From Oikopleura dioica (Eukaryota > Animalia > Chordata): a stretch of 64,000 nucleotides of DNA. The notes below the pieces were generated by a model, which was not told the DNA's origin, did no database searches, and was given only the letters and a program-made list of their open reading frames with translations. Where the stretch lies: positions 4,712,001 to 4,776,000 of the forward strand of contig OU015569.1 in the NCBI GenBank assembly GCA_907165135.1. The letters run 5' to 3'. Every line of letters starts with the position of its first letter. Position 1 is the stretch's first letter. A program made the translations under genes and the position numbers. Of this stretch, positions 14,767 to 21,959 are shown in pieces.

Positions 14767-16048
14767 ATGAACTCGCCAGACCTTATGTTCCGCAATGGCT
14801 TTCCACTTGCCTACCAGTACTCCAGTGCGCAGCCTTATCACCAATCAGGTACTCCAGCGGGTGGAACTTACTACATGTGGTCCGGCAGTGAGCCGACTGC
14901 AAGTACGGCACAGACGTTGAATGAAACCGGCGATAGCGTTGGAAACTCCTCCACAATGTCATCTGGCTCTCCTCCGCCACAGGAAGCATTGGTAGAACAC
15001 CAGGTCCTCCATCCTCACAACGGCCATCCTACCCACGTGCCCATCAAAGTCGAAGATGCCTACGGAGGAACCGCCTACCCGACAATGCAAAATCACCACT
15101 TTCATTACCAGCCTCAGATTCAGGTTTGTCCCTTTCCCTCTCGCCGTTGATCATAAAATTATCGAATGAATGATGAATTTGTGGTGCCTTGCTAATTTTA
15201 GCCTACCGGAACTAAACTTAATTCATAGGCTTTGCCCGGGATAACATCGCTCTCCTGGGCTGGCTCCGAACAGGAGGAGTGGAGACTTCGACATCAGATT
15301 CAACATATTCATGACCGTAAGCTATGAGTAAAATCTACTTGAACTCATTTCTTTTCTAGCTAATAAGACTCGAACGCGGGAAAAGTACCGAGTCGTCTAC
15401 ACGAATTTTCAACGGCTAGAGTTGGAGAAAGAGTACAGATTCAATAGATACATTACCATCAGCAAGTAAGTTCAAATGAACTTGTGGAAATTGAAAATTT
15501 GTCAGAAGGCAATTTTTATCTTTGAAATATTAATCTTTTCTTTTCAGAAAAGCCGAATTGGCTAAACAACTTCAACTTTCTGAGCGACAGATCAAGATTT
15601 GGTTTCAGAATCGGTAAGTCCTTGTTGCTATCAAATCCCGGGCGCAGGCAAAATTGAGCGTTGAGTGATCAACCGCCCAGACATTACTTTTCTCAGACAA
15701 AAATGAGCCATTGTCGTCATCTCAGGAATTTAGACGTTTTTTTAATGTCTTTTTTTTAGCCGCGCAAAGGAGCGCAAACAAACCAAAAGAGTCGGCTCCG
15801 AGTCGGAAAACGGCGGCGATGACATCGACGGGGCAGTGAATGATGACATCCTCGTCGGTAGATCTCCCTCTTCGGAGCAAACTATCACTGAAGGAGAGCA
15901 GGAAATCGCAGCGTTGCAGAGCAGCTCGTCCTCAAGCGGTTCTCCGCCTGGCCAGTCTCCTGCAATTCAGAGCATTATGGACAACCTTGTTGATTGCACT
16001 GAGAAGTACTTGAGCAAGACAGAATGGATAAAGTTTGAGCCTAAATAA
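14767..16048 (+). CDS. Cdx: Caudal-type (ParaHox) homeobox transcription factor
   Basis: Spliced homeodomain [63 protein letters not shown]; KYRVVY and RAKERK are Cdx-diagnostic. Homeobox introns at 15466-15547 and 15614-15759. Confidence 0.92.
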
Positions 16049-16497
16049 GATGACTAGTCATCGGTCCACATTCAATAAGTATAAAAAACCCGTAATTTTA
16101 CTGTGCCCGTCATCAAGACTTGAAAAATGAACTGTCTGAATTTTGCTCACTGCAAATCATTATATTTGCAATGTCACTGTACATTTTATTGTTCACTGCA
16201 ACACCATCACCGAGTTATGTTATTTCATCAAATTGCTTAATAAAGGTCCAGAATAAACCCTCTTTATTCTTCTTGATTTCCCAGCTCCACTGCCATTTTT
16301 TCCTACTAGAATAGCAAAGTGTTGACCTTGTAATTTTGTAATAATTGATAACAAAGTAGTAAACAGGGCAAAAAAAGTTCCCAAGTCAAGATTGTAATTG
16401 ATTAGGTAATTTATTACGAGGCGATTATCATGAATGAACATTTTATGAGCGCGAGTCTATTTAGAGATGTCTAGTTGGCAGTTTTCATTTAAAAAAA

Positions 16498-18060
16498 TCA
16501 GCAATTGAATTCATTTTCTGGCCACAGTCCATCGTTGCAAAATATTGTGCGTTCTTCATCCGCGCAGGAGATGATGCAAAAGTACGGGTTGCAAAATTCC
16601 TGAACTTCATTTGGTGTCAGTGCTTTGGGTGTTTCCTTGCAGAAGATAGGACGTTCTTTCACTAATAAAATGGACAAATGTTCATTTAATCAATTTAAAG
16701 TTGTGTCCCGCGAATACGAATTAAATAAATGAGTCACAGATAATTTTTTTTGCCCATTTCCTAGGAAATCAATTAAACTTATTTCTGGGTCGAGCATGCG
16801 ACAGAATACCTTCTCAGCGAACTCAGGAAGGATCCATTCATTAGTTTCATTATTACAAATAAGATAGGGTATGTTCGGGGATCGATTCATGGGGCATGAG
16901 AAAAAACACTCTGCGACGCGACAATCGACGCTGACGAGATCGTCGATTTCAACTTGTTGCGAGACATCAGCGCACTCCCCTAGCTCGTAAACTTGATTTT
17001 GCTTCGTAGACGGATTATTGATGAAAAGATCGGACTGCTGCGTGCTTGTCTCCAACCACTCCATTTCCGATTTTAATGACGCCGTTGTCTCCATGTAAGT
17101 TGTCGTTTCAGAATGTGACTTACCAACAGATGTCGGATTTGATACTGTTGTTGCTTCGTTTGGCTTAGTCGTCGATTGTGCAGATGTGGACGTTGTTAAA
17201 TGTTTTGTTGATGTTGTTATAGTCGTTAAAGTAGTAGATCTGGTAGTGGAAGATGTTGAAGTCGTTGAAGTCGTTGTACTAGTAGTTGTTGTTTTCGCCC
17301 AGTGAGGAGTTGTTGTAGCTTTCGGTTTTCGTTTGCGTTTCTTCGGTCTATTGAAAGATTGAAAATATTTTTCAATCTTCATTCAAATGATAATACCTTT
17401 GAGTAGTTACTGGCGCTTTCGTGAATTGAATCCAATCAAGAAGACTATCATCCGCTTCTTCTACAGTTAGTATCAATGAACAGTCATCGTTTCCGCTACC
17501 GCTATGTGTATCGTAAGCAGTAACGATTCCTTTGAAGCGCTTTTTCGATGAACTTTCTTCTGTTTCGTTTTTAGAATTGAATTCGCCGTAAACTGCCGCG
17601 CCTTGATAACTTTCGCATTTTACATTATTCATAAGGACACACGGAGAAGAACCATTTTCATCAATTTTGCAGTCGTTAGTCCATATTCCATTTTGTACGG
17701 ATGCATGACTTAGTACTGTCACCTTGCTTCCGTTCGGCAGCGCTGAAGATTCAATTTCTTCTACTGTCGGTAAGCAAGCAGGCTTTTTTTTGAGTGTCGA
17801 ACATGAAATTTGTTTATAAAAAGAAATGATCGACTAAAGTTCGAAACAGACCTGTGTGAACATGACGTAGTCTTCTAAGTGAAGCAAGCAAGTGGATATT
17901 GAGCCTTTGTAAAATCGCCTGATGATCTTTTCCAGGTTGAAACTAGACTTTTCTGGAAAGCGAAAAATGAAAGAGTTTGAACCGAAGCCGGAGCACAAAT
18001 GATCCAACGACGCCACGCGAGACTAAAAGCGTAGCATCATCAGGGCAACAGTCTGCATCA
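16498..18060 (-). CDS. Extracellular protein with a Thr-rich mucin-like linker and two degenerate CCP/sushi-like modules; 5' end uncertain
   Basis: ORFs 17372-17722 and 16690-17382 (poly-Thr tract; CRVAECFFSC..ICNNETNEW); last exon FCNPYFCIISC..FCNDGLWPENEFNC*. Confidence 0.55.
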
Positions 18061-18625
18061 GTAAGGACTCTGTTCGCAAGATCGCCAAGAACCACTCCAG
18101 AGCAGTCATTAAAATCTACAGCAGGATGCAAGACTTTGTCTTTCTGTCATATTTATAAATGTAATTTGCAAGCCTGTTCTGGACTCTGAATTTTCACCAT
18201 CCAAGGCGGCGGGCCAAACGAATTGATCTCTACTTTTGAGCATTGCTGAGCTCGCAGATAACTTATATAAAAAGACAGAAATATCAAACGACACATTGTT
18301 ATTTCTTTTTTTAGCCCTGCAAAAAGTTTCACTCGTGGAGACTAGCAGACTTCAACCGCCTTGCCCAATTCCTCGCCGTTATCCTTAAATTGGCACCTTG
18401 AATATTTGCTGACGGGCAAAATACTAGGCTGGAAATATCGAACTTCGACATAAACACGTAGAATGTGGTATTTATTATTTACATTCAGTAGTTTTAACGC
18501 AAACTTTTTACATATATTATCAATGAGCTTAAATGCTGAAAAGATTGTTTCCTCACAGAATAAGCTATAGACAAGTGTTAGCAAAAGAATTGCTGATAGG
18601 CATATCATATGCCGCATATGAGAAG

Positions 18626-20009
18626 TCACAGAATATTTTTGAGCTCCAAGGATTCAACCGACGCTGCTGCAAAACGTCCTTGATCAGCATTGCGATTGTG
18701 AGACAGTGTTTTAGCAATTCTACTGATTTTTTGCTTTCGTCGCCGTGCTCGTTCGTGGCGCAGGATATTCGCTGTCTAAAAATAATTATTGATTCTGAAT
18801 CCAGTGACCGTTGTGAAGCATGTCTCTTGGTAGACTTACGATGGCGTAAAATGAGATGAAGACGATGATAAATATGCAAAAGCCACCGCCCAGCTTGAGG
18901 AAAATCTTGCCGTCTTTTTGATACTTTAACGTGTTCCCTTAACAGATGCTGGTCGTCGTTTCTTTTCTAACGTTTACCATCTGAATATCCGCTTTTATAG
19001 ACACAATCATTGTGGGTGAAAATACTCTGTTGAACTTTGCACTTGAGTTTTTCTTCTTTTTCAAGTGTTCCGGGGTCGCAACTAGGTATTTATCGGAGAA
19101 AATAATCTGCTCTGATCCTGTCATAATACCTGCAATACCATCCTTGAGTTGTTTCTAAAGAGCTGAGGCATTTCTCGTTGATGTCTTCCGGACATTCCAT
19201 ATTCCAAAATATTTCGATGGGACAGTCCACGTTCAAGTTCACATACGCTTCTCGGCAGTTACGATCGCTAGAAACAATGTTCAGTAAGAGCTTGGTAAGC
19301 GCGTGAACCTTAAACAGTCGTGGTAAACATCATTGCACGAGTAAAAGGTGTGGTTTTTCTCCAGACAGGGCCATGGTAAGTACTGATCTTTCATTCCTTT
19401 GCAAGAATCGGCAGTCGGGCAGCATTCAAAATGCTATTATGTCGTTACGACTTCGATAACGGAAAAAGCTCCTTACAGGTTTCGTGAAGCGATAGCCGTT
19501 TTGCTTAGCGTGACCTCCGAAAAAGAATCCAGAAAGTGCAGAAACACAATTTTCTCGGTTGCAAGGCACTTCATCCGTATGATAGCACTACGAAACAATG
19601 AAGTGTTTACGGTCTCAGAGCTCTGAGGGAAAAGGTCTTGAGGATAAAAGTCAATGAGCGGCCGTACATTTTAAATGTCGCTCGGATTTAAGCAAACAAA
19701 ATTGCCACTTCAAGCTACGTTAGTATCAACTTACGCTCATTGAAATATTGGCCATGTATTTTCCACACTGTTCAACGTTATCGAGGCATTCGTCGAAGTA
19801 TCTCTTACATGAGGCGTCGGACTGGTAACAGGTTTTCTATTCGAACCTCTAGCACTCTGCAAATCGCTTCTAGTAGGAACCTGTTTCTTTTCCATGGTAC
19901 GTAGTTGCTTCTCAAAGACTCGGCCACCGAGCGACTGTAATGTGTGTCCGCTTACTAGCTCAGTGCCAGTAGCCTTGATTATCAAAATGCTAATTTCAAT
20001 CAGCATCAT
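18626..20009 (-). CDS. GDNF-family-receptor-alpha (GFRalpha/GFRAL)-like single-pass membrane protein, 318 aa, 8 exons
   Basis: Exons 20009-19881, 19836-19735, 19587-19477, 19433-19309, 19267-19130, 19081-18978, 18937-18840 and 18775-18626 join by GT-AG introns of 40-147 nt with consistent phase. Product: signal-like N-terminus, two Cys-rich GDNF/GAS1-type domains, TM segment GGGFCIFIIVFISFYAI, then RHERARRRKQK. Confidence 0.78.
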
Positions 20010-20308
20010 TCTGGCAGTTTTACTTACGCTTGCGTGAGCATATGATACGGATCATAGTCGCATATCAACTGAATTTAAGCTATTTCTAATATTTGAAAAG
20101 AAGGGAATAGAGATTTTGTCACGATACGTTATCGCCTCTTTTACTTTAGTCATAAAGTTCGCGAAGTACCAGAAATTATTACGCCCGTTGTGATTTCGAC
20201 TATTTTATAATAAAAATATAGCTTCCTTTCATGAAAACCGACTCAATAACCTTTCAGGAAGATAAGCTTGTAACCGACATTTTCTCTGACTCTGGGGAGC
20301 GTTACGAC

Positions 20309-21687
20309 TTATGGTAATGGTCCACTAACTGTCAGAAACGAGGGGGCCTCTGGAAAACAATAAAAAAATCTTTCCCACAAATACATACTTGGTTCGCAGT
20401 CAGGAGCTTCGCACTTGTAAGAATAGTCCGCAGTCTGAGCAGATTGAGAGTAAGAAGTCAACGATTTCATGAAGAGTTCGGCGTCCGTCTGGTACTCACT
20501 GATATGGCGAATTTCGGCGAATTCAACTTCTTCAAATCGAGTGTCCAAGTTAAAACAGACCTTGTAAAGGTTTTGGCTGTAAAAGTTCAGTGCGTTTGTT
20601 GCTTTTCGTAGACAAAGCATCGAAAAAATACTTTCGGTTGAACTCTGTTCCTAGTCTGACGGCTATACTCGCCATCGATTTGAAGCTGGACATCCGCATC
20701 TGAGCCAGCCTTCTGAGAGCTCCAGTTAAGACTAGCGCCTCCGCCCGTTTGATCAATTTCTTGCAAGTCCGTGATTTCGAAGGTCTTCGAAACGTAGCCG
20801 GGGAAGAAGGTAGTATTACCGTAGAAGGCATCAAATTCATTAGAGAATACGCTTGTCAAGTTGGCTTTGGCATCATCAACCGATGTCTGGTCAGCGAAAT
20901 CGACAACACCCTGGTAAGCTTCATAACATCCTTGAGTGTTCACATCAAAGTATCGACATTCTTGCTCGCTAGTTCGGCAGGACTCGTGGTAAAGACCAGG
21001 TTCACGGAAGGCAAAGTCGGGGTTGAGGTCCATAGCCTGGGTGTAATAAGGGTCGCCCTCGAACTTTGCGTTAACTCCAAGAGCAGCAGTGATCGCAGCC
21101 TGGACATCTGCCTGGGCAAGATCTCCTGAAATTATTTTGTAAAAATATTCAACTGTGCGCTATAATTACCCTGGTACATGGCTTGCATGATCAAGTAGTA
21201 GTTGAATGTATCGAGAGTCCGTTGGTAAAAGTGTCGATAAACAAACTTATTGATTCGTCTGAAAGATGTAAAGGGAATCTCTTTGGTAGTATCTTTATAT
21301 ACCGAGCGGTAGCAATTTGCCCATTTTCTCCCATAGCCTCAACGTTCACATCAAGAATTGCAGGCATCTGTTCTCGGATGTCGTTCAAGTACATCAATTC
21401 CATTGGTCGCTTTCGAGGTCAAAATTTAATATCTTATACTTTCATATTGAGGTTTAAAATTTGTGACCGTCCGTAAGAGGTATCATATCCTGCAATGATT
21501 CCAGTTCCAGGCAGCGACTCCAAAACATATACAAAGCCTAAAAGTAGATTAAACCTTCGATCTCTTGGAGCTTCGGTAATCTTCAGTATGAGTCTCTATT
21601 TTCTCTAAATCGAAAAACTTTACGTTCGGATTTGTAAGTTTCCTGCGCCTGGGCAAGCCCAGCAAGGAGCGGGAGGGAGAGCTTCAT
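20309..21687 (-). CDS. Secreted Cys-containing protein of unknown function, multi-exon
   Basis: Signal peptide MKLSLPLLAGLAQAQE at 21687; exonic ORFs 21191-21403, 20587-21033 and 20309-20620. Confidence 0.55.
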
Positions 21688-21959
21688 CCAGCAGCCGATT
21701 GAAAAGTTGTCGAGTGGTGGACCTCTCTCGTCTAAAACTAAAAAGGGATGAGTGAAAATGGCAAGCCGAGGCAGAGTCGTGAGCTGTTTACGAAACAATA
21801 AGCGCGTTCGGCCGCCGACGACGACAACCGGGGCTGATAACCGCGAATCCGCCGGGCCGATCCTTCAGGAAGCTTATTCACATCACAATTTCGCAGTTCT
21901 TTGATTCTCTTGTAATCCTAGCACCAAGGCGTCTCGTCGAAATTTAGTTCGTTATTGAT

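Follow-up and report, generated by a model that had tools for sequence, protein, structure and literature searches.

Proteins of the GFR superfamily share a domain that is defined by ten conserved cysteines, their fixed pairing, and five helices (PMC7299427, PMC4349606, PMC3527400). GFRAL, with three such domains (D1 to D3), is held by a single-pass transmembrane anchor and ends in a short cytoplasmic tail; in D2 of the GFRalpha proteins, an RRR motif serves ligand binding (PMC7299427). GAS1 has exactly two 10-Cys GFR-like domains, the first of which is equivalent to GFRalpha D2, and is attached to the membrane by a glycosylphosphatidylinositol (GPI) anchor (PMC4349606). Gfr-like proteins with 10-Cys domains also occur in invertebrates, i.e., in animals without GDNF ligands, which have not been found outside vertebrates; they are predicted in sea urchin, C. 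elegans, and Ciona, and the Drosophila protein, DmGfrl, is GPI-anchored, exceeds 1000 amino acids (aa), and has four domains (PMC3527400). GDF15, the ligand of GFRAL, reportedly originated in jawed vertebrates (PMC7299427). The present study deals with a gene on the minus strand, at positions 18626-20009, of a 64,000-nucleotide stretch of Oikopleura dioica DNA (contig OU015569.1, positions 4,712,001 to 4,776,000; hereafter the window). With a probability of about 0.75, we read it as a very divergent, transmembrane, two-domain member of the GFR superfamily. Tunicates are the sister group of vertebrates. To our knowledge, both the GDNF-family ligands and GDF15 are taken to have arisen within vertebrates, the GFR-like receptors are older, and the functions of the latter in invertebrates are largely unknown. 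A literature search retrieved no paper linking Oikopleura to GFR receptors.

The gene is real, spliced, and conserved; it is under purifying selection, and it is expressed in a sister lineage. Eight exons, whose ends were set via the donor and acceptor sequences, are separated by seven introns of 59, 147, 43, 41, 48, 40, and 64 nucleotides (nt), all of the GT..AG type. The joined frame is open across 942 nt and gives a protein of 313 aa, including 21 cysteines, with a TGA stop at 18626-18628 (Table 1). A preliminary description of this DNA, made by reading the letters, had proposed just such a model of eight exons and seven GT-AG introns. The model holds, being a clean frame that is colinear with an mRNA-backed orthologue, and every peptide stretch quoted there is present in the three minus-strand frames; the length of 318 aa given there was a slight miscount. 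The same description called the gene hidden. The public entry is indeed unnamed and truncated at its N-terminus, but the gene is already in the annotation of the Bergen O. dioica genome (CBY11931.1 / E4XQ45_OIKDI).

Database searches were run exon by exon, or with the database proteins so retrieved; the joined 313-aa model was used only in local comparisons, namely blastp and tblastn against fetched sequences, the count of substitutions, and hydropathy. A phmmer search with exon 5 (45 aa) against 1.84 billion representative proteins retrieved a 315-aa protein, P0001 (68.5 bits, E 1.8e-14), which belongs to the North Atlantic lineage of O. dioica. The 90% cluster of P0001 includes the Bergen entry, an 'unnamed protein product [Oikopleura dioica]' of 247 aa that starts at an internal Met. 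P0001 is 66% identical to the joined model from end to end, and the eight exons align to it in order with their ends abutting. Family scans, folding, and fold searches were run on this orthologue rather than on the window protein. P0001 is encoded without interruption on L001, a 1257-nt contig of the Joint Genome Institute (JGI), which is shorter than the genomic gene and is therefore a spliced mRNA; four JGI samples yielded spliced contigs of this kind (L001, L005-L007). On the Bergen O. dioica locus L008 (FN653100.1:18394-27812), L001 falls into eight blocks of 97-99% identity. The internal exons measure 87, 111, 125, 138, ~107, and 98 nt in the Bergen genome and 87, 111, 125, 138, 104, and 98 nt in the window, the gap at exon 6 being a one-codon indel. 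Thus, all seven intron positions are common to both lineages and are verified by mRNA in the sister (Bergen) lineage. Furthermore, colinearity extends to the flanking genes in window 15.5-21.9 kb and in L008. Since the gene and its neighbours are colinear, the window represents the orthologous locus of an O. dioica lineage that has diverged strongly.

The protein consists of a hydrophobic N-terminus, two 10-Cys domains (A and B), a short stalk, a hydrophobic helix of 19-23 residues, and a basic tail of 49 aa. The N-terminal hydrophobic stretch (best 10-mer at a Kyte-Doolittle [KD] hydropathy of 2.77) is conserved in the O. dioica proteins; exon 1 likely supplies a weak signal peptide, which would be cleaved. 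The hydrophobic segment near the C-terminus reaches a KD of 2.42 in its best 19-mer and is followed by 44 residues that open with a basic cluster. In the AlphaFold2 (AF2) model of the orthologue, residues 248-299 form a helix at a predicted local distance difference test (pLDDT) score of 85-92. A hydrophobic 19-mer (KD 2.2-2.7) followed by 42-94 residues with a basic beginning is found in all six family members. This segment is therefore a transmembrane anchor and not a GPI signal, as the preliminary description had read it from the helix and the basic tail. The GPI signal of GFRalpha1-4, i.e., a hydrophobic end without any tail, is absent from the window protein and from all relatives. The tail itself is conserved between the O. 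dioica lineages (66% in exon 8). The NIS sequon of domain A is kept in 6/6 family members, as would suit an ectodomain in the lumen or outside the cell. At the place of the RRR of GFRalpha proteins, between Cys 9 and Cys 10 of domain A, the window protein has KGMKD; none of the six ectodomains carries RRR, in agreement with the missing triad remarked on earlier, and the only RRR of the window protein lies in the cytoplasmic tail.

The fold of the orthologue points to the GFR family. A full-length AF2 model of P0001 (pLDDT 50) was too poor to use; even so, its Foldseek search had GFRalpha3 chains in the first two places, and about 19 of the best 50 rows belonged to the GFR family. We used an AF2 model of the ectodomain, P0001:44-240 with alignment A4, with a mean pLDDT of 54, in which domain B stands at 70-80 and domain A at ~40 and which shows 5 + 5-6 helices. 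In a Foldseek search of this model against PDB, ranks 1-27 were all GFRalpha1, GFRalpha2, GFRalpha3, or GFRAL chains. The E values of ranks 1-25 were 6.7e-3 to 0.09 at probabilities of 0.90-1.00, and ranks 26-27 had E values of 0.56 and 1.8; the alignments covered ~200-220 columns, i.e., the whole D2-D3 pair. VIA-align, which is independent of Foldseek, was run against 48,161 representatives and returned GFR-family chains in all of its top nine rows, the best unrelated row having a Z of 3.8. Its best match was to domain B, with GFRAL 5vz4_B at Z 7.2 and a root-mean-square deviation of 3.5 over 87 residues, followed by GFRalpha1 D3 (6.8), GFRAL 6q2j_D (6.7), GFRalpha3 (5.9), GFRalpha2 (5.9), and GAS1 7rhq_G (5.8). 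In a shape search of the ESM-Atlas, row 1 was a GAS1-like cluster with PF02351, the Pfam family of this domain, at a weak template modelling (TM) score of 0.34. The orthologue model thus shows the five-helix GFR fold in domain B; the pLDDT of domain A is ~40. The structural comparison proposed in the preliminary description came out in its favour as far as GFR or GAS1 proteins rank at the top of three libraries, on an orthologue model of medium confidence in which only domain B reaches pLDDT 70-80.

The cysteines tell a similar story. Each domain has the ten cysteines of a GFR domain, and all of them are conserved in the six family members. The gaps between successive cysteines in domain B are 6, 5, 10, 9, 7, 11, 1, 12, and 11, as compared with 6, 5, 10, 9, 7, 27, 1, 9, and 11 in rat GFRalpha1 D3 (PMC3527400 Fig. 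S1). Seven of the nine gaps are equal, and the remaining two amount to a shortened loop and a three-residue change. In domain A, the gaps are 6, 6, 10, 7, 4, 26, 0, 5, and 11; those of DmGfrl D2 are 6, 5, 10, 4, 4, 23, 1, 16, and 10 (PMC3527400). Besides, the motif CNRENC-VSALSGFF of domain A parallels CNRNAC-MSSLQAFY in D2 of Drosophila Gfrl (PMC3527400 Fig. S1). The spacing and the C..AL..FF motif to which the preliminary description had pointed thus match the published GFR domains.

Additional support comes from the relatives, all of which derive from marine metatranscriptomes: P0005 (315 aa), P0006 (441 aa), P0014 (422 aa), P0015 (299 aa, truncated), and fragments. Three word-index protein searches returned larvacean-type relatives only (P0005, P0006, P0013-P0015) and no named GFR protein. 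At the N-terminus of P0006, P0014, and P0013 lies an extra 10-Cys domain, which is D1-like, so that P0006 and P0014 have the layout D1-D2-D3, transmembrane helix, and tail. For this extra domain, PF02351 is the top Pfam match in P0006 and the sole match in P0014 and P0013, all of them below threshold (the gathering score being 22 bits; matches were considered to E <= 10). P0006:5-100 scores 14 bits (E 0.086) over positions 1-76 of the 87 of the profile, and the E values for P0014 and P0013 are 2.8 and 3.2. When the three domain types were compared among themselves by hhalign, only the first four cysteines came into register, at probabilities of 4-20%.

Considering the above, homology to GFR domains is much the likeliest reading, because three libraries agree, the matches are exclusive to one family, and that family had been predicted beforehand from the cysteine pattern. 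Each of the fold and pattern figures is modest alone, and their weight comes from the agreement. Several observations weigh against this reading. The models are those of a 66%-identical orthologue, with mean pLDDT values of 50-54 and ~40 for domain A; no Foldseek E value is at or below 0.001, the TM-scores are ~0.4, and a Z of 7 lies in the range that helical models can reach by chance. By sequence, no PF02351 match at E <= 10 was obtained in the eight exons, in P0001, P0005, and P0006, or in the cut-out D2- and D3-like domains, so the Pfam check suggested in the preliminary description failed for the two domains, whether whole or cut out. Likewise, a search of PDB by sequence with the exons, the orthologues, and four family profiles gave no GFRalpha, GFRAL, or GAS1 chain, and exon-by-exon searches of Pfam, and of PDB by phmmer, gave noise only. 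Language-model look-alikes were not reproduced between two family members and were discarded (P0001 pointed to GDNF clusters at 0.80, P0014 to thrombospondin-repeat clusters at 0.87). Moreover, an acidic residue lies within the hydrophobic core of the N-terminal signal, which is weak, and the three-domain P0006 and P0014 start at the first Cys-rich domain, without an N-terminal hydrophobic stretch.

The start of these three-domain proteins deserves a comment of its own. An in-frame stop lies upstream of the P0006/P0014 ATG on three independent mRNA contigs (L002:1-142, L003:1-160, L004:1-60). In these relatives, a disulphide-rich ectodomain of 300 aa would have to be exported without a hydrophobic signal, which is puzzling.

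Within the superfamily, the window protein comes closest to GFRAL in its anchor, having a transmembrane helix and a short cytoplasmic tail instead of a GPI anchor. GFRAL also provides the best structural match to domain B, and the more distant relatives P0006 and P0014 reproduce its full layout. In contrast to GFRAL, two domains stand in place of D1-D3 in the window protein and its O. dioica orthologues, and there is no detectable sequence similarity. With GFRalpha1-4, the window protein has in common the D2-D3 pair aligned by Foldseek and the D3 cysteine spacing pattern. Mammalian GFRalpha4 has a two-domain layout, which recalls the window protein. However, the latter differs from GFRalpha1-4 in its helix and 49-aa tail in place of a GPI signal, in KGMKD in place of RRR, in the adjacent C7 and C8 of domain A (CC, not CxC), and in a D3 loop of 11 residues as against 27. 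Without a GPI signal and without an RRR motif, it is not a GFRalpha1-4 protein in the strict sense. The invertebrate Gfr-like proteins resemble it in their 10-Cys GFR domains and in the D2 motif CNRxxC..L..F[FY], whereas DmGfrl, with the size, anchor, and domain number given above, differs from a transmembrane protein of 313 aa with two domains.

GAS1 calls for a closer comparison, because the window gene could be a larvacean GAS1 orthologue whose GPI anchor was swapped for a transmembrane helix and which would be no kin of GFRalpha and GFRAL. The window protein has two GFR-like domains, the first of them D2-like, as does GAS1; homologues of GAS1 are reported in Ciona and amphioxus, and a proposal exists that GAS1 was the ancestor of the GFR-like proteins (PMC4349606). 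Its chain 7rhq_G lies less than 1.5 Z units below the best VIA-align row, and a GAS1-like cluster occupies row 1 of the Atlas shape search. On the other hand, the two-domain alignments of Foldseek prefer GFRalpha and GFRAL (E 0.007-0.09) over GAS1, which comes at rank 29 with an E of 3.1. P0006 and P0014 have three domains, as do GFRalpha1-3 and GFRAL, and every member has a transmembrane helix and a tail where GAS1 is GPI-anchored. A GAS1 origin is in our opinion unlikely.

It is more unlikely still that the gene encodes a lineage-specific, Cys-rich, helical membrane protein without any homology to GFR domains, its fold match and cysteine spacing being due to convergence or to modelling bias. 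Such an origin would account for the failure of every sequence-based test and for the low domain-to-domain hhalign probabilities (4-20%), and it would sit well with models of low to medium confidence and with the fact that Z values below 8 can arise for helical bundles. It would leave to coincidence that GFR and GAS1 chains come first in three structure libraries, and nearly exclusively so in both PDB searches, that seven of nine domain B gaps equal those of rat GFRalpha1 D3, that the D2-type motif CNRxxC..L..F[FY] is common to Drosophila Gfrl, and that PF02351 is the best (P0006) or sole (P0014, P0013) Pfam match of the sister domain in the relatives.

Regarding the gene itself, the window and its orthologue differ at a proportion of 0.76 of synonymous (pS, saturated) and 0.19 of nonsynonymous sites (pN), giving a pN/pS of ~0.25; pN is 0.16 in the ectodomain and 0.19 for stalk, helix, and tail together. 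All 20 ectodomain cysteines are kept. An exact 34-mer of exon 5 had no match in a metagenome collection, and a degenerate pattern scan of the same collection retrieved sister-lineage mRNAs only. An artefactual spliced model, or a pseudogene decaying in the lineage of the window, is hardly credible: exact or near-exact transcripts of this lineage are indeed missing from the metagenome collection, but the frame is open over eight exons with canonical splice sites, every intron position is common to the mRNA-verified orthologue, no ectodomain cysteine has been lost, and the low pN/pS goes with a saturated pS.

As a divergent member of the GFR superfamily, the window gene would encode a type I single-pass membrane protein. 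In its ectodomain, two GFR domains of the GDNF/GAS1 type would follow each other in tandem, as the counterparts of D2 and D3 in vertebrate GFRalpha and GFRAL. Each of them would be a five-helix bundle with ten cysteines, with the presumed disulphide pairing and membrane topology of the family. Within the superfamily, the gene would fall into a larvacean branch that is small and evolves fast, and whose other members likewise have a predicted transmembrane helix and tail, and some have a D1-like domain. Its most likely role is to bind a partner, either secreted or in a membrane, at the cell surface, as a binding subunit or a co-receptor. As D2 lacks the RRR motif, the canonical GDNF-ligand site is probably unused; and since GDF15 is dated to jawed vertebrates, the ligand cannot be GDF15, as it is for GFRAL. 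Given the missing RRR motif, the absence of GDNF ligands outside vertebrates, and the jawed-vertebrate origin of GDF15, another partner is to be expected. Precedents for such partners are NCAM/FasII for Drosophila Gfrl (PMC3527400) and Hedgehog/Patched or RET for GAS1 (PMC4349606). The conserved basic tail may serve in sorting or signalling.

The placement in the superfamily would add a tunicate branch in which all members are transmembrane rather than GPI-anchored, and it bears on the question of whether the transmembrane anchoring of GFRAL is ancestral or convergent. Being small (313 aa) and expressed, the protein would also offer a handle on what GFR domains bound before there were GDNF ligands. 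A much bolder proposal, which we regard as a long shot, is that transmembrane GFRAL-type receptors predate vertebrates, and that the larvacean family, i.e., the three-domain form together with the two-domain form of O. dioica, represents GFRAL and GFRalpha in tunicates and works with a divergent cystine-knot ligand and a RET-like receptor with a degenerate kinase. If that were true, a RET-type co-receptor system would be running without kinase activity. On the practical side, E4XQ45_OIKDI serves as a warning, for it is without domain annotation because the divergence of larvaceans exceeds the reach of Pfam.

The exons of the gene and the neighbouring genes are listed in Table 1.

Table 1. Exons of the GFR-like gene and neighbouring conserved genes in the window (identities are to P0001 for exons and to L008 for neighbours)
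Feature	Window positions	Strand	Content	Identity
Exon 1	19881..20009	-	ATG at 20009; hydrophobic N-terminus MMLIEISILII..., then a poorly conserved linker	40% (to the P0001/P0005 N-terminus; first 15 residues kept)
Exon 2	19735..19821	-	Start of domain A (D2-like), Cys 1-3, NIS sequon	72%
Exon 3	19477..19587	-	Domain A Cys 4-6, motif CNRENC-VSALSGFF	76%
Exon 4	19309..19433	-	Domain A Cys 7-10 with KGMKD, domain B Cys 1-2	85%
Exon 5	19130..19267	-	Domain B (D3-like) Cys 3-7, with CPIEIFWNMECP and GWYC	67%
Exon 6	18978..19081	-	Domain B Cys 8-10 (IFTHNDC), start of the stalk	74%
Exon 7	18840..18937	-	Stalk and transmembrane helix (about IFLKLGGGFCIFIIVFISFYAI)	69%
Exon 8	18626..18775	-	End of the transmembrane helix, basic stop-transfer RHERARRRKQK, 49-aa cytoplasmic tail, TGA	66%
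Upstream neighbour	20310-21900	-	Conserved; orthologous to a 387-aa gene at L008:923-3498	61% over 255 aa
Downstream blocks	17650-18424	-	Conserved coding-like blocks; L008:5518-7823	56-81% (aa)
Homeodomain gene	15565-16061		PF00046 in the Bergen record; L008:8375-9419	up to 87% over 107 aa

Two shorter database proteins, P0002 (139 aa) and P0003 (92 aa), read through, or begin in, an insertion that falls precisely on the junction of exons 4 and 5. They are probably open reading frame calls on the genomic DNA of another larvacean, in which intron 4 would therefore occupy the same position. At the other end of the gene, the sequence ...aactgccag-a-ATGATG is conserved between the lineages (window 19995-20025, L001:235-265), with ccag just 5' of the ATG; the AG three bases 5' of the ATG could be a candidate spliced-leader acceptor.

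The upstream neighbour ends ~300 nt before the ATG of the GFR-like gene. Pfam searches of the neighbouring conserved open reading frames (upstream neighbour and downstream blocks) gave no match. In the Bergen lineage, the L001 mRNA contig begins only ~30 nt past the annotated end of this neighbour, so that co-transcription of the two genes as an Oikopleura operon is possible. Among the downstream blocks is a 409-aa open frame of L008 that the Bergen record does not list with its called genes. Further downstream, the homeodomain gene completes the microsynteny block.

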